Source: Ruditapes philippinarum (taxonomy: Eukaryota). From it: a DNA stretch of 64,000 nt. The DNA is taken from contig NW_026867139.1 of the NCBI RefSeq assembly GCF_026571515.1, positions 62,001 through 126,000 of the forward strand. The letters are read 5' to 3'. Position numbers and translations under genes: made by a program. Below the pieces are notes generated by a model. That model searched no databases and was not told the origin of the DNA. It saw nothing but the letters and a program-made list of their open reading frames with translations. How positions within the stretch are numbered: position 1 is the stretch's first letter; every line of letters begins with the position of its first letter. Below, one piece after another: positions 5,201 through 45,887 of the stretch.

Positions 5201-5866
5201 CTTCATGTTTCATTTGAAAACGTTTTTGAATGTGTAATATTGTGAAGGTATCAAAAGGAAGCAATTTACACAATATCAGTGGCACTTCAAAACCACGTAA
5301 ATTACCAAAAAGAGGTCAAAATATGCAGAAATTGCCTTTACTGCGTTAGTAACGCAGTAGAAATATAGTTATAAATACTGAAAAATCAGTCATTAATCGC
5401 ACTAAGTATGTAAAATATTACTTGAATCTTGAAACTTTTTTACTTTTCCTTACATCTTAGTACATTTTTTCTCAAGTTTGATTTTATTGAAATATTTTGA
5501 CTCACCTGGAGGCATGTAGCTTTAAATTCATTTCATTCTCGCTCTCATCTTAAAATTGTTTATGTGTGGTTGTTAAAAAGTCTATAAAGAAGCAGGTGTA
5601 TTTCGTCAAAATTGGGATATATCACCTTAAATTTGCACATAAAACGACTTAACTGTTGGCACTTGTATATGGTAGGGTATATACATTATATGAAATTAAT
5701 ATACGCGATATGTATGTCCAGGTACGCGAATCATGTACCTGATTGTTTTCTCATTTTTTTTCTCTCAATGCATTACACAAACTGTGTTGTTCATTTTCAT
5801 TAACTTATTAGATTCACGTACATATGTGTAATATTTAGTGCGGTATTATTTTTTTGCATTGTATCT

Positions 5867-8800
5867 TTATGGCACGGATGAAAAGAAGTCGCGTTCATTC
5901 TCCATACTTCGCTTGAAGACGGTTAGCGCCATCTTGCGGTTTATTCTGCCATGTTTTTCCTCTTCATTGATCAACGTCTCAAGATCAATGTACCCGGTGT
6001 AAGTTGGGTCCAGATTCTCTTCGACCCATTGTGTGTACACTCCGAAATCGTTCTGCAATAAAAGTGATGGCGTTAAATAATGTCTAGGGGTTTTGTCAAC
6101 AGAACTGGTATCATGTGAATCACTTAAATACTTTGTAAATGGTATCAATTTTGGAATAGTTTATAATAACTTAGTGTTGAAAGCTATAGGTTTATTGAAA
6201 GACACTCGAATCCGTTTCTGGAACCAACTAGTACTAAGCAATGAGTGTAAAGTTTCTTTCTCGTGGAATCTAGCTTGCCAGAAATCCCACACGGCCTGCA
6301 AACTTTAATTAGATTACTAGTCCGGCGTGATAACCATTCGGCCACGTTGCCACTCATTTCCGGTTAATACATTTAATAAGATATGGTAGCTATGTCGCAT
6401 TAAGCATAGAGATTGATTTAAAAAAGTATTACAGTTATTACCATAAAATTAAAATTTACAAGATTTTAAGATGAATACATTGATGATGAATTGGTTACCA
6501 GTCGGATGTTTTGATGTAAAATTTGAATTTTGTGTTATTTGTCAGCTTACTTTAATCAAATTATAACCGCTTATTTAAAAAAACACCTTATGAAGGGCTG
6601 GCTTAAAACGTGTGTCTGTTTGCTTTAATTAAATTCGTACATTGAATAGATAAGTTGGTCTGGGTCATAGCTTGCTGTCTATTTACCAGTTTTGTTTTAA
6701 ACTCGTTGCCAAGGGCTAATGGGTAACGACCATGTTTCCCCCCATTTCATACCAGTATTGATAAGAACCTGCTAACATTAGGACGGTGAGTTGATGGCAG
6801 TTTTTCTGGGCTAAGAGCTTAAAGACGCATGTAACAATGTAACAATCTACTTGCCTGTTTTGCTGTAAGTTGTTTACCGAGCCACGGCCAGAGTTTGTAG
6901 CAAGGTAGCATAGCAGTGACGAAGTAAACTGCATCATAGTTGATGGCCATGTCATATAAATGATCAAGGTAATTTGAACAAGCTTTTCCGAGATGGATGC
7001 CACTTGTATACTTGATTGACCAAGCTTCTAACATGTGTTCGCTTAATCTAAGATACACCAGAAAATAAATAAAAAAATTCATATCATTTTATAACACTGA
7101 TTTAAAGCGAATGGTGGCCCTCGGTGTGGTGTGTTTGCCTCTCAACATGGGGACCACTGGTTTGGGACCATATTTCCGTATACTAAGTAATACATTCAGT
7201 ATTATTTAATTCCAAAAAAGCAAACTTGATAGTGATTAAAAAAGCTGCACTATTTCTTTTTACAATCGAGTTTAAATCAAATTATGTTTAAACTAATGAA
7301 CTATTATTTAAATAGTAAAACTTTTAGAGTGAAATCTTATAATAGTTATATGGAAGGTAAGGAAAGATAACTACCCTTTGTAAGATTCAGACATCTTCTG
7401 AAGCAGTTGTCTAACTTTACTATCTTTTGATTTTTGTAGAGCTAGTCCAATAAGTCTATACGTATTGTAGATGTACACAGAATCTTGAACTACTGTCCTA
7501 GGATGATAACTTGAGCCTTTGTTTACATAACAAAGACCAATAACAATGCGAAAAATAGGTTAGGCAGATCAATGCCACAATCTATAAAAATGAAAATAAA
7601 ACTACATGTTATCATATGTCTTGTTAGCGCAGCAGGTAGAGCAACCGTGTCAGTAATGAGTTTATCCGTACAGACAGAAGTTCGACTACTGGTACATTTT
7701 TTTTACCTCAGAACAGTCAATTGTTTGACCGGTTTTATGCATACATGAATATGAGATCGAATATTTCATTTCACTGTGATCAAAAAATACAAAAAGAAAA
7801 AAGAATAGAAATAAAAAATAAATATATACTATAAAATATATATCATAAGAAGAAAACAAAAAGGAAAACGAAAATAAATGAATAATTATAATGATAAAAA
7901 AAACAGAGCAAGAAGAAAAACCTGTGGTTATAAAATGGCACTACTTGGGGTTCGAACCTATGAGAACAAAACTCTAAAAGTTACAAATAATTTCGATCTA
8001 CCGACAGAACCATAACGGTAATACGCAAACGATACTGTAAGAATAATGCTATATAGTATTTGTAAGTGTTTACTTTTACGATATCGGATAATAATCCAGA
8101 TAACCCCGTTTTTGGACTTTCCCATGTACCGTTAAGACCAAATTATCATCCTAGGACAGTACATATGAACCTTTAAGTATTGAAAATAATCGATTATTTT
8201 GATAAAAAAAAATAATCCGTTAAATAAACACACTATACAATTATTGACTAGTGTGACATTGAATATGATGTGATATTCACAGGCAGATGGTAGATAAGTT
8301 GACCGAGGCGATTAAAAATTAATGAACGTGAATACATAATAAGCGCATTATTCACAAATTAAAATCGATCTTTAGGTAAACGTTGCTTAAAGAAGCATGC
8401 TAACAGATTTATGGTAATGTTCATCAATCTTTTGGAAATGTATTAAAATTTCGTTTATACTTTTCGAATGCTCTCGTCATTTCACAAATATTGTTTCTTA
8501 AAATTATTTGGCTCATTTGGAGGCATGTAGCTTTGACAATTTGAAAGGAGAGCCACATTTTGTTCAACATATTAAAATAATTAAATCACTTAAAAACGCA
8601 AAAAACACCGAGAAAATAATCTGCAAAGAACGCAACTTCAACCGGAAACCAAATCACAACCATATGAATGACAGTTACATCTAGTTCACTATATGCTATT
8701 ACAAGTTATTTGAAATATAACGTTTCTAGGTCTAGACATTTGAGTTATTGTGTTTTTAAAACTATTTTTTCAGCCAAATAATTATTGGGAACAAACAGTT

Positions 8801-42536: not shown

Positions 42537-45500
42537 TTACAAAAGTATAATGATAACAACAACAATGAGAAGGACCTCGCCCCAACCTACATCCCGTTTT
42601 GGTCTAAGTCGTCTGTGAACTGACAGAGCCTTTACTGTGTTTTGAACTTCTGCAAATAAAAGATAGTTCCTAATTAATTTTTTATTCAAACTCTTTAAAG
42701 GCACATTATGCCCCAGAAATCAAAATACATGTATTTTTTTTTAATTCTTTAGAAATGTCAAACATTGTTTTATAATGGATTAAGAGCATGTTAGATATTC
42801 AACAACTGAAAATTAGCTATGAACATGCAGTGATGTGTGGTAAAGGTATCAAAACTTAATCAAAGTAGTATTTTGACTTCCATACATTAAATTTCATTAA
42901 ATATACCATTTGACAACAGACCAAAATAAGCAAAAAGAGATTTTATGTATATGGCAAATGAGTATTTTTTCCTAAACCCTGACAAGATACCAAAAATAAA
43001 CAGGTTTTGAGAAATAAAATTTTTAGCGTTTGTATTTTGATGAGAAAAAGTCTTGGCATAAAGATGTAGCGATAATATAATACACATGAACCTTGCAGCT
43101 CTTTATACAGAAATCTGTATTTGGCTCATTTGTCTGGTCAAGAAAGTTCTTTTATTTCATAAAACATTACCCTTCAATACTTTGAAATACAGCAAACATT
43201 TCCTATATACAAGTCAAAGTTCGTGCATTGGCCAGACAAAAGAGCATAATGCCAATCGTCTTCCTGGTGAGCAATACCATTTCAGACATCAGTCATAAAT
43301 TAATTAATGCTCTCTAAAATCATCGAACAAACGTTAATTTTGGGATTAAAGTATATGTTGAGGCTACTAATTTGTGAAAATGTTAACAAATGAACTTCAC
43401 AAGAAAGCCTTAAAACTTCTTGTCAAATATGCAACAACAAGAATACTACTACCCAGCCTCCCTTCCCCCACTTCCTCATACTTAAACTTACCCGGCATTG
43501 GTTTCAGCTCGTATACTTCCAGTCCTTTACAAAGCTCAGCTGACAGGGGCGATAACTCTGACTGATAAACGATGTCATCTTTTTGGAGATGAAGCGATGT
43601 TTTCTTGTTGGGAAATTTAAACTGAAATAAATAAGTATGTTAATACCTTTTTGTTAAGAACAGCATATCCCTGTGTAAATGTGAAAGGGAAAATATACTT
43701 TACAGATCTAGAGTTGACTTCTTTTCAGTTTGTGAAATAAGAATACTGAGGCAGTACCGAAATAACATAAAGTTTCACGTCATTGATTGATGTTTTTTAC
43801 AGTACATTTTTTTATTTAATATTTTAGTATGCACTGCCGATGTCTTTAGGATACAAAACTAGTTCTGTGCCATGAGGTCAAACGAGACGTGGCTCTGTCA
43901 CTTTTTCGTGTTGTTGTTGTTGTTTTTTTTTTCAAACTTGTTTCAAAGAGTGGTAATCGCACCATGATTTCACAGTATTACCATCGATATTCTTTTAGAA
44001 TAACAAATGTCTTTTTTCAAATGTTTCACTAAAAGATCGTGCAAAAACTATTCGGCGACCTTTTCATGCATTCACACAGAAGCTGACTATTTTGTATCTT
44101 ATTGTATCATTCGCGTAAAGAAGTAAACTACGATAAGATATACACCTACCTCTTTATCTGGGTTTTTGAGAGCGTTCTTTATTTGTTGTAAGGTGACTAG
44201 TTCTTCATTAAATGCTAACACTCCACAATATTTGGCATCTGGTGAGTTTTTCATCGTCATCAACATCTGTTGAGGAACAAAATATTTATAATTAGAGGTA
44301 TGTGCAATAACAATATATTTGTTTGGAAAATAGAATAAGTAATTATAAACAGTAGTTTGAAGTAACATATTGTTAGTCGCGATTGATGCCGTGCTGCTAC
44401 TGTTGCTGCTGATATTGAAGATAGTTAAGGATGTGATGATGATTGTGGTGATGATGATAATGATGATGATGATGATGATGATGATGAAGATTATTGTATC
44501 AAGATTCAATTTCAGGAATTTTAGTTAAGAAAAAAAAAAGAAACATGATTAAATAAAACACCCAAAATTTCTCCTTATGCTTCAAAACATCAGATAATTA
44601 TAACATTACTGCAATAGCAACAGATATATCAATAAAAGGAATGTTAGCGGTCAAGATTGCCAGCCATAAAGTCTATCATAATTTTAGGCTTTAAATGTAT
44701 GCTAGCTTTGTAGTCTATATATCTATATACAACCACGACAACAATCATAAAATAACAACAAAAAAGTGGCTACATGGCCTAGTGATTTATGCGTCAGACT
44801 AAAAATCTTATAATCGCTAGCCGCATGGGTTCAAATCCCGTCAAGTGCGAGTCGTTTCCTTAAGCAAGAAACATTTTACACTCATTGCTCAGTACTGGTT
44901 GGTTCCAGGAACATATTCGAAAGTGTGTCTATCAGATTATAGCTTCCCACGCAGTCAAACTAAAATTCTGTTTAAACCAAAGTGACCACCTATACATTAA
45001 TCTTGCATTTTGTCCTGAGCGCGAAATGTCATTCAATTTTCTATGGGGATAATTAAACTGTAAAAAGTCTATACTGATTTAATACCAACTGTATAGTGCA
45101 CTCAATCGGCATTACATTGAAATAAGCACATTAAAATACCTTATCGAAATCTAACACCACACTCATGCCACCTTGAACCACGAACTGCACTTCCTTGTTG
45201 TGGATGGTGACCGCCTGGCCTTGTTTCTTCTGTACACCTCTCATCTGACCGTTCTTTAAGCTCGAAGTCACATAGTTAATGAAATATTCCTGTAATTATA
45301 TTATGAAAAAATGCAATACGGAAAGACTCCTACAAATGGAATAGCACATGAAAAATTATTGAAATAGTTATATTGAAGTTTATTGTATCAGACTGGAGTT
45401 CTTGAAGATCGTAATAAATCTAATCTTATAGTTGTCTTCTATAAGAGAGTTCTGTTCTTCGAATAAAAATAACATTCATAACAAAATAATAATAATAATA

Positions 45501-45887
45501 CTATGAAGAAGAAGAAGAAGTATTAAGAAGAAGAAGAACTTTTTGCAGTTCTGAGGGACATTAACCAATTCTGCACATACAAAATATGTTATTTTTCCAA
45601 TCCTGGAAACAACAATTTTGTATTCAAAGCTACACATAAATAAGTTCTGCGCTGTAAAAAACGCAGATAATGATATACACTTGTATTAACCATATTTTGA
45701 AAGTACCAAAGATATGCACATCTAAGCAATAGAGAGAAACATGCATTCGTTTCAGCCGAAAATATGCAATAAGATAAGCAATATTATTAACACATACCCC
45801 GTCCGATCTCTTCTTCATTTCCCCTACATGATATCCAAATGTCATGGCAACCAAGCATAGTAAAGAGAGTACATGAAACTTATTCAT
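42537..45887 (-). CDS. Secreted BRICHOS-domain prepropeptide, 199 aa, 5 coding exons, with a C-terminal hydrophobic peptide
   Basis: Exons 45887-45798, 45289-45140, 44266-44150, 43621-43492, 42649-42537; GT-AG, phases 0,0,0,1; 600 nt. Protein: MNKFHVLSLLCLVAMTFGYHVGEMKKRSDG/EYFINYVTSSLKNGQMRGVQKKQGQAVTIHNKEVQFVVQGGMSVVLDFDK/MLMTMKNSPDAKYCGVLAFNEELVTLQQIKNALKNPDKE/FKFPNKKTSLHLQKDDIVYQSELSPLSAELCKGLEVYELKPMP/EVQNTVKALSVHRRLRPKRDVGWGEVLLIVVVIIILL*. BRICHOS hallmarks: VVLDF (conserved Asp), a first Cys 17 residues later, and the L...LC.G..VY.L end. Confidence 0.85.
44430..44488. repeat. (GAT)n microsatellite in an intron
   Basis: Direct reading; it explains the poly-Ile stretch of ORF 44099-44509. 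Confidence 0.9.
44765..44970 (+). mobile_element. tRNA-derived SINE (Meta-type core)
   Basis: A-box tggcctagtg, B-box gggttcaaatcc, and core 'cactcattgctcagtactggttggttccaggaac'. Confidence 0.78.

Follow-up and report, generated by a model that had tools for sequence, protein, structure and literature searches.

Positions 42537-45887 of a 64,000-nucleotide stretch of the genome of the clam Ruditapes philippinarum (contig NW_026867139.1, positions 62,001 to 126,000; hereafter, the window) hold, on the minus strand, a five-exon gene for a 199-residue protein that combines a BRICHOS fold with an 18-residue C-terminal tail, the last 12 residues of which are exclusively valine, isoleucine or leucine. 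We favor, at a probability of about 45%, the reading that this is a lineage-restricted clam BRICHOS pre-pro-protein whose aggregation-prone client is its own C-terminal aliphatic segment, which is predicted to be cut off by a furin-type convertase. In BRICHOS proproteins a beta-prone stretch is shielded by the domain located on its own chain, and the mature portion is usually freed by convertases (PMC9714404, PMC10182729); proSP-C is so far the only BRICHOS proprotein with an aliphatic membrane segment as its client (PMC10182729, PMC9714404, PMC2751770). The clam precursor fits this pre-pro-protein template, and its peculiarity would be the client, an aliphatic run instead of a polar or Cys-bonded hairpin, at the C-terminus behind a convertase site.

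Gene model, homologues and the conserved tail

The joined frame of the gene is 600 nucleotides long (199 codons and a TAA stop), and all four introns start with GT and end with AG. Its translation is, letter for letter, that of XP_060577865.1 (hereafter P0005; "uncharacterized protein LOC132734975", Ruditapes philippinarum, 199 residues, RefSeq). The gene is thus not hidden, as the initial annotation of the window had it, but already annotated in RefSeq, although without a name and without a BRICHOS or other domain annotation. A literature search for the two clam LOC identifiers found nothing. The remaining layout proposed at the outset, i.e., the five-exon open reading frame of 199 residues, a signal-like N-terminus, the Asp and the Cys pair, RRLRPKR and the 18-residue tail, was recovered in full at the following coordinates, with the signal peptide judged by inspecting the sequence.

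45798..45887, minus strand: exon 1, residues 1-30, with the start codon at 45887-45885
45887-45834, minus strand: signal-peptide-like segment in exon 1, approximately residues 1-18, judged by inspection
45815-45807, minus strand: conserved dibasic site KKR in exon 1, residues 25-27
45140..45289, minus strand: exon 2, residues 31-80, with the extra N-terminal beta-strands and the first BRICHOS strands
45151-45149, minus strand: Asp77 in exon 2, invariant in the family
44150..44266, minus strand: exon 3, residues 81-119, with BRICHOS strands and helix 1
44227-44225, minus strand: Cys94 in exon 3, invariant in the family
43492..43621, minus strand: exon 4, residues 120-162 and one further nucleotide, with the inter-helix strand, helix 2 and the last BRICHOS strand
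43531-43529, minus strand: Cys150 in exon 4, within helix 2, invariant in the family
42537..42649, minus strand: exon 5, residues 163-199 and the stop codon, holding linker, basic site and tail
42614-42594, minus strand: RRLRPKR in exon 5, residues 175-181
42593-42540, minus strand: 18-residue tail in exon 5, residues 182-199
42587-42576, minus strand: GWGE in exon 5, invariant in the family
42575-42540, minus strand: 12-residue V/I/L run in exon 5, running straight into the stop codon
42539-42537, minus strand: TAA stop codon of the joined frame, in exon 5
42512-42507, minus strand: AATAAA polyadenylation-signal hexamer, 25-30 nucleotides past the stop, a sequence match only

The position of the AATAAA hexamer agrees with exon 5 as the last exon of the gene, and the junction between 43492 and 42649 is backed by the RefSeq model as well as by homologues with the same C-terminus. 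Whole-protein analyses were run on P0005, which is identical to the joined translation, and the gene model itself was searched exon by exon.

A search with exon 2 against 1.84 billion representatives retrieved an uncharacterized protein of 196 residues from Mercenaria mercenaria (P0004, identical to XP_045203976.2). A profile of P0004 and the exon pieces then retrieved P0005 and two proteins from Logan, P0006 (178 residues) and P0007 (202 residues), and further homologue searches found only these four sequence clusters in the family. P0006 and P0007 are each complete on Logan contigs of 1.1-1.7 kb. These contigs are most simply read as spliced transcripts from other species, because whole proteins fit within 1.1-1.7 kb whereas the clam gene, its four introns included, extends over 3.35 kb.

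In all four homologues the C-terminus reads GWGE, then a stretch of exactly 12 V/I/L/F/A/C-type residues, directly before the stop codon. In P0005 these 12 residues are only V, I or L, and the tail contains two acidic residues (D and E), no Cys and no basic residue; the 18-mer has a monoisotopic mass of 1962.2 Da, a grand average of hydropathy (GRAVY) of 2.53 and an isoelectric point (pI) of 4.05. Mean pairwise identity is 69% for GWGE plus the 12 residues, 38% for the BRICHOS core, 29% for the signal peptide and 25% for the pre-tail linker, so conservation within the protein peaks in GWGE plus 12. Three of the four carry a furin-type R-x-K/R-R motif that is separated from GWGE by two residues (RPKR in P0005 and P0004, RQKR in P0006). 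The linker carrying this motif has low confidence in both structure models described below and is probably disordered, which would leave the putative convertase site exposed. Another basic site is located just after the signal peptide in all four (KKR, EKR, LKR and RRR; a full RxKR in two of them), so that convertase-type sites border the BRICHOS module on either side. The N-terminus is hydrophobic in each of the four homologues.

When the 1.4-Gb assembly was searched for a DNA pattern of GWGE plus seven hydrophobic codons, the clam locus was the single match, and the reversed control gave four. With this single occurrence in the genome, the tail motif is therefore no general sorting cassette that other genes also use. 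Runs of at least 12 V/I/L residues occur five times in the six frames of the window; four arise from translated trinucleotide microsatellites, which leaves the tail as the sole run with mixed codons (20 shuffles gave 0-1 such runs). A chance open reading frame or a microsatellite artefact as the origin of the tail was rejected based on its conservation and mixed codons. Composition (D and E present; no K, R or H; no Cys; pI 4.05) likewise led us to reject a cationic antimicrobial peptide as the cargo.

The BRICHOS domain in profile and structure comparisons

The BRICHOS superfamily is defined by one conserved Asp and two conserved Cys that form a disulfide (PMC2751770, PMC9627735), and in the four-sequence alignment of the clam family Asp77, Cys94 and Cys150 are invariant. 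BRICHOS precursors consist of a signal peptide or transmembrane segment, a linker, the BRICHOS domain and, after it, a C-terminal beta-prone region (PMC10182729); a signal peptide, linker, BRICHOS and C-terminal beta-prone region are also present in the clam precursor, as read from the sequence and the alignment.

The Pfam profile of the domain, PF04089 (length 91; gathering score 25 bits), which the initial annotation had proposed as a check, gave a divided answer. Three of the four members matched it over nearly its full length, but all of them below the gathering score, i.e., P0005 with 15.3 bits (E 0.023), spanning positions 6-90 of the 91 in the profile, P0006 with 13.9 bits (E 0.063) and P0007 with 20.3 bits (E 6.5e-4). 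Single exons gave no BRICHOS match in the Pfam search, and a six-frame genome scan with PF04089 did not pick up the clam locus. The top match of that scan, at C3026:53861-53965 (23.4 bits, just below the cut-off), is a different BRICHOS-like exon that is unrelated to the locus. With a profile of the family searched against all PDB sequences, the two best matches were proSP-C BRICHOS (E 0.064), to which the family's Asp and first Cys align, and a phmmer search of PDB with P0004 returned nothing meaningful.

An AlphaFold2 model of P0005, based on the four-sequence alignment, has a mean predicted local distance difference test score (pLDDT) of 59.9, and its core (residues 55-115 and 130-160) reaches 75-89. 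In a Foldseek search against PDB, the six best matches were the six chains of 2YAD (probability 1.00, E 7e-3, template modelling (TM) score by target 0.57-0.67), the crystal structure solved for BRICHOS of proSP-C. VIA-align superposed the model on 2YAD with Z 8.8 and a root-mean-square deviation of 3.1 Å over 72/79 residues, and 2YAD ranked first (Z 7.8) in a scan of 48,161 representative chains; these best Z values lie near the stated noise ceiling of the aligner (7-8), and the confidence of the model is moderate. In a second AlphaFold model, made for P0006, strands and helices follow one another as in that of P0005. Both contain two extra N-terminal strands and a strand between the two helices, which are typical of non-proSP-C BRICHOS domains (PMC9714404, PMC10182729). 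The ESM Atlas neighbours of P0004 and P0005 were BRICHOS, ITM2, gastrokine and OAF clusters (features 0.91 and 0.89; structure TM score 0.56-0.62).

Given that independent lines of evidence converge (the sub-threshold Pfam matches, the invariant residues and the structure matches), the assignment of the clam protein as a divergent BRICHOS domain below the Pfam cut-off is supported. The initial annotation had named the lack of a BRICHOS fold, or of a basic site and tail conserved in homologues, as outcomes that would speak against it. The fold is borne out by the near full-profile Pfam match, the invariant Asp and Cys pair and proSP-C BRICHOS as the top structural match, and the last exon recurs with the tail in four of four homologues and RxKR in three; none of these outcomes was therefore observed.

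As a separate observation, residues 26-159 of the P0005 model, including the N-terminal strands, also resemble bacterial LolA/LolB lipoprotein carriers and ependymin-related proteins (Z 4-6, approximately 100 residues). Proteins of these types hold lipid tails in a half-barrel, and the likeness may reflect a common arrangement only.

Processing of the precursor and competing explanations

According to the reading that we favor, the precursor would enter the endoplasmic reticulum (ER) via a signal peptide that is presumably cleaved, and the BRICHOS domain (approximately residues 55-160 and the two extra N-terminal strands) would fold there with a Cys94-Cys150 disulfide. Its client would be the extreme C-terminus, i.e., the predicted beta-prone segment of GWGE plus 12 V/I/L-type residues, which the domain may shield in cis or in trans during the partition of the client into the membrane. 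Cleavage after RPKR181 (Arg181) would be made by a furin-type proprotein convertase late in the secretory pathway, and a second conserved dibasic site, KKR27, would probably be used to trim the N-terminus. The expected products are a soluble module of ~16.6 kDa and an 18-mer with an acidic head that would stay associated with membranes or lipids. For this peptide the initial annotation had put forward candidate roles as a surfactant, functional amyloid, coating or defence peptide.

Several observations weigh against this reading. P0004 gave no match to PF04089 and none of the four members reached its gathering score, and the conservation statistics are thin, with only four sequence clusters. 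Release of the 18-mer is predicted from the sequence motif, and P0007, the most distant homologue, has KKPKGEPG in place of RxKR, suggesting that cleavage is not universal or is performed by another enzyme. In the AlphaFold models the tail is a free helix of low confidence rather than a strand docked on the BRICHOS sheet; a complex prediction for BRICHOS (residues 30-162) with the linker and tail (163-199) scored 0.00 and gives no evidence either way. Twelve hydrophobic residues are also short for a bilayer-spanning helix, and a signal peptide together with a hydrophobic C-terminus that has nothing after it is also a hallmark of glycosylphosphatidylinositol (GPI) signals.

The tail could alternatively be a short type-I membrane anchor, with cleavage at RPKR shedding a functional BRICHOS module (a gastrokine-like factor or a chaperone) and leaving the 18-residue stub as waste. 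We regard this as somewhat unlikely. The architecture and the RxKR site fit it equally, gastrokines are secreted BRICHOS proteins, gastrokine-2 and ITM2 were nearest in the Atlas structure search, and the BRICHOS domain of Bri2 is shed and secreted (PMC10182729). However, hydrophobicity alone would suffice for an anchor, yet GWGE is invariant, the run is exactly 12 residues long in four of four and the tail is the best conserved segment. The basic cluster would moreover be located on the lumenal side with nothing on the cytosolic side, which, judged by the positive-inside rule, is unusual for a type-I anchor. If the tail is instead a GPI signal, a transamidase would remove it in the ER and the BRICHOS domain would be GPI-anchored at the cell surface, with the basic stretch as a spacer or linker. 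The signal peptide and the hydrophobic C-terminus, which extends up to the stop with no charged residue after it, agree with this, and so do small-residue triplets (G184-W-G186 in four of four, D182-V-G184 in two of four) and, in three of four, Ala/Ser triplets at a distance of 18-20 residues ahead of the hydrophobic run. Discarded GPI propeptides are normally poorly conserved, and the tail, as the most conserved segment with its invariant GWGE, is unlike what is expected of one. The canonical signal has small residues at omega and omega+2 and a spacer that runs from omega+3 to omega+9 or further, and it is hydrophobic from ~omega+10 onwards (bioRxiv 10.1101/838680), whereas the conserved triplets place the run at omega+4 or omega+6, and the upstream candidates need a strongly basic spacer of 15-17 residues and are absent from P0006. 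At the level of sequence, geometry and conservation thus weaken the GPI alternative, which we consider unlikely, and no GPI-anchored BRICHOS proteins were found in the literature at the title and abstract level.

It is very improbable that the basic site is unused and that the tail stays on a soluble secreted protein, packed permanently on the BRICHOS sheet or mediating oligomerisation or lipid binding. P0007, without RxKR, would suit such a protein, and so would the resemblance of the model to LolA/LolB-type carriers (Z 6.0, 99 residues), whose half-barrel accommodates acyl chains. On the other hand, three of four homologues keep RxKR and do so with constant spacing to GWGE, docking was seen in neither AlphaFold model, and an aliphatic strand of 12 residues exceeds the modelled BRICHOS strands, which are 4-7 residues long.

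Copies in the genome and relation to known BRICHOS proteins

The initial annotation had suggested a search for paralogues with variable tails; exon-wise protein searches of the clam's own genome detected only two degraded copies on one contig.

C5597, 4806-6750 (plus strand) and 5697-6207 (minus strand): degraded copies with exon 2-, 3- and 4-like pieces, 57-80% identical

These copies have in-frame stops, a frameshift and a lost second BRICHOS Cys, the tail exon was not found in either by the exon-wise searches, and they are probably pseudogenes. A 55-residue fragment from a JGI contig (P0008), in which exon 3 is read on into the intron, differs by one residue (NPNKE versus NPDKE), and this suggests an allelic variant of the clam gene in another sample. 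Within intron 2, a tRNA-like stretch at 44775-44841 on the plus strand (Rfam tRNA, 20.4 bits; gathering score 29), in which ARAGORN found no tRNA, is probably the remnant of a tRNA-derived short interspersed nuclear element. Trinucleotide microsatellites, (ATC/ATG)n-like and (CTT)n-like, are located at ~44440-44500 (intron 2) and 45500-45540 (intron 1). The intron microsatellites yield long open frames, e.g., a poly-Ile run and a 141-residue frame around exon 3, that could mislead the reading of open reading frames.

Among known systems, proSP-C (SFTPC) likewise pairs, within one precursor, a BRICHOS domain with a poly-V/I/L, beta-prone, membrane-type segment. In both proteins the hydrophobic segment is the most conserved part (69% versus 38% for BRICHOS in the clam family; 96% for the proSP-C segment, Hedlund 2009), and the structure of proSP-C BRICHOS is the best structural match of the clam model. 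[quoted passage not shown] Sequence identity between the two is 16-19%, and the SP-C propeptide profile PF08999 gave no match to the clam protein at E up to 10.

Bri2 (ITM2B) is similar in that BRICHOS precedes a furin-type site, beyond which comes a short C-terminal peptide (Bri23 in Bri2), and ITM2 clusters are among the Atlas structural neighbours (TM score 0.56-0.62). Bri2 is, however, a type II membrane protein, and the peptide that it releases is a soluble, disulfide-bonded beta-hairpin and not aliphatic. The polychaete BRICHOS antimicrobial peptides (AMPs), i.e., arenicin, alvinellacin, capitellacin and nicomicin, share with the clam protein a signal peptide, a BRICHOS pro-region and a C-terminal peptide in a lophotrochozoan (PMC6780910, PMC6265681, PMC9756803), and the reviews consulted describe BRICHOS-AMPs from polychaetes only. 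Their cargo is cationic, amphipathic and mostly a Cys-bonded beta-hairpin, whereas that of the clam is acidic, Cys-free and non-amphipathic. The gastrokines (GKN1/2/3) are also small secreted proteins, of ~180-200 residues, in which a signal peptide and BRICHOS precede a short C-terminal region, and a gastrokine-2 cluster is among the nearest Atlas neighbours of the clam protein; their C-terminal regions differ in being polar and beta-prone with conserved Cys, and have no aliphatic run and no GWGE.

The clam protein thus joins the logic of proSP-C to the layout of Bri2 and arenicin and is a member of none of these families. It does not belong to the proSP-C family because its client is C-terminal and PF08999 does not match, it is not a BRICHOS-AMP because its cargo falls outside the cationic, Cys-bonded definition, and it is not Bri2-like because it is not a type II membrane protein. 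The most fitting classification of the clam family is that of a divergent BRICHOS family, restricted to its lineage, whose cargo is of a new type.

BRICHOS biology leans largely on one natural guard of an aliphatic, amyloid-prone membrane segment, proSP-C, which is the only exception among BRICHOS architectures according to a 2023 review (PMC10182729). The clam protein is a possible invertebrate counterpart of proSP-C, with predicted processing and function. A bolder version of the idea, which we consider quite unlikely, is that heterodont clams have a second natural "SP-C system" that evolved independently of vertebrate lungs. BRICHOS would there chaperone a convertase-released V/I/L peptide, and the presumed functional product would be stable and lipid-embedded or lipid-organising, e.g., surfactant-like, functional-amyloid or membrane-active in mucus, gill or mantle secretions. 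A BRICHOS survey that required PF04089 at E < 1e-5 (PMC9627735) would not have recovered the family, which shows that such cut-offs overlook divergent BRICHOS precursors of invertebrates. The practical value of the finding is modest until expression, cleavage and function are established. If true, it would provide a second example that is evolutionarily separate, whose client sits at the opposite chain end and whose BRICHOS domain belongs to the common extended type, and thereby a direct test of how BRICHOS recognizes poly-V/I/L segments and of the uses of such peptides outside lungs.

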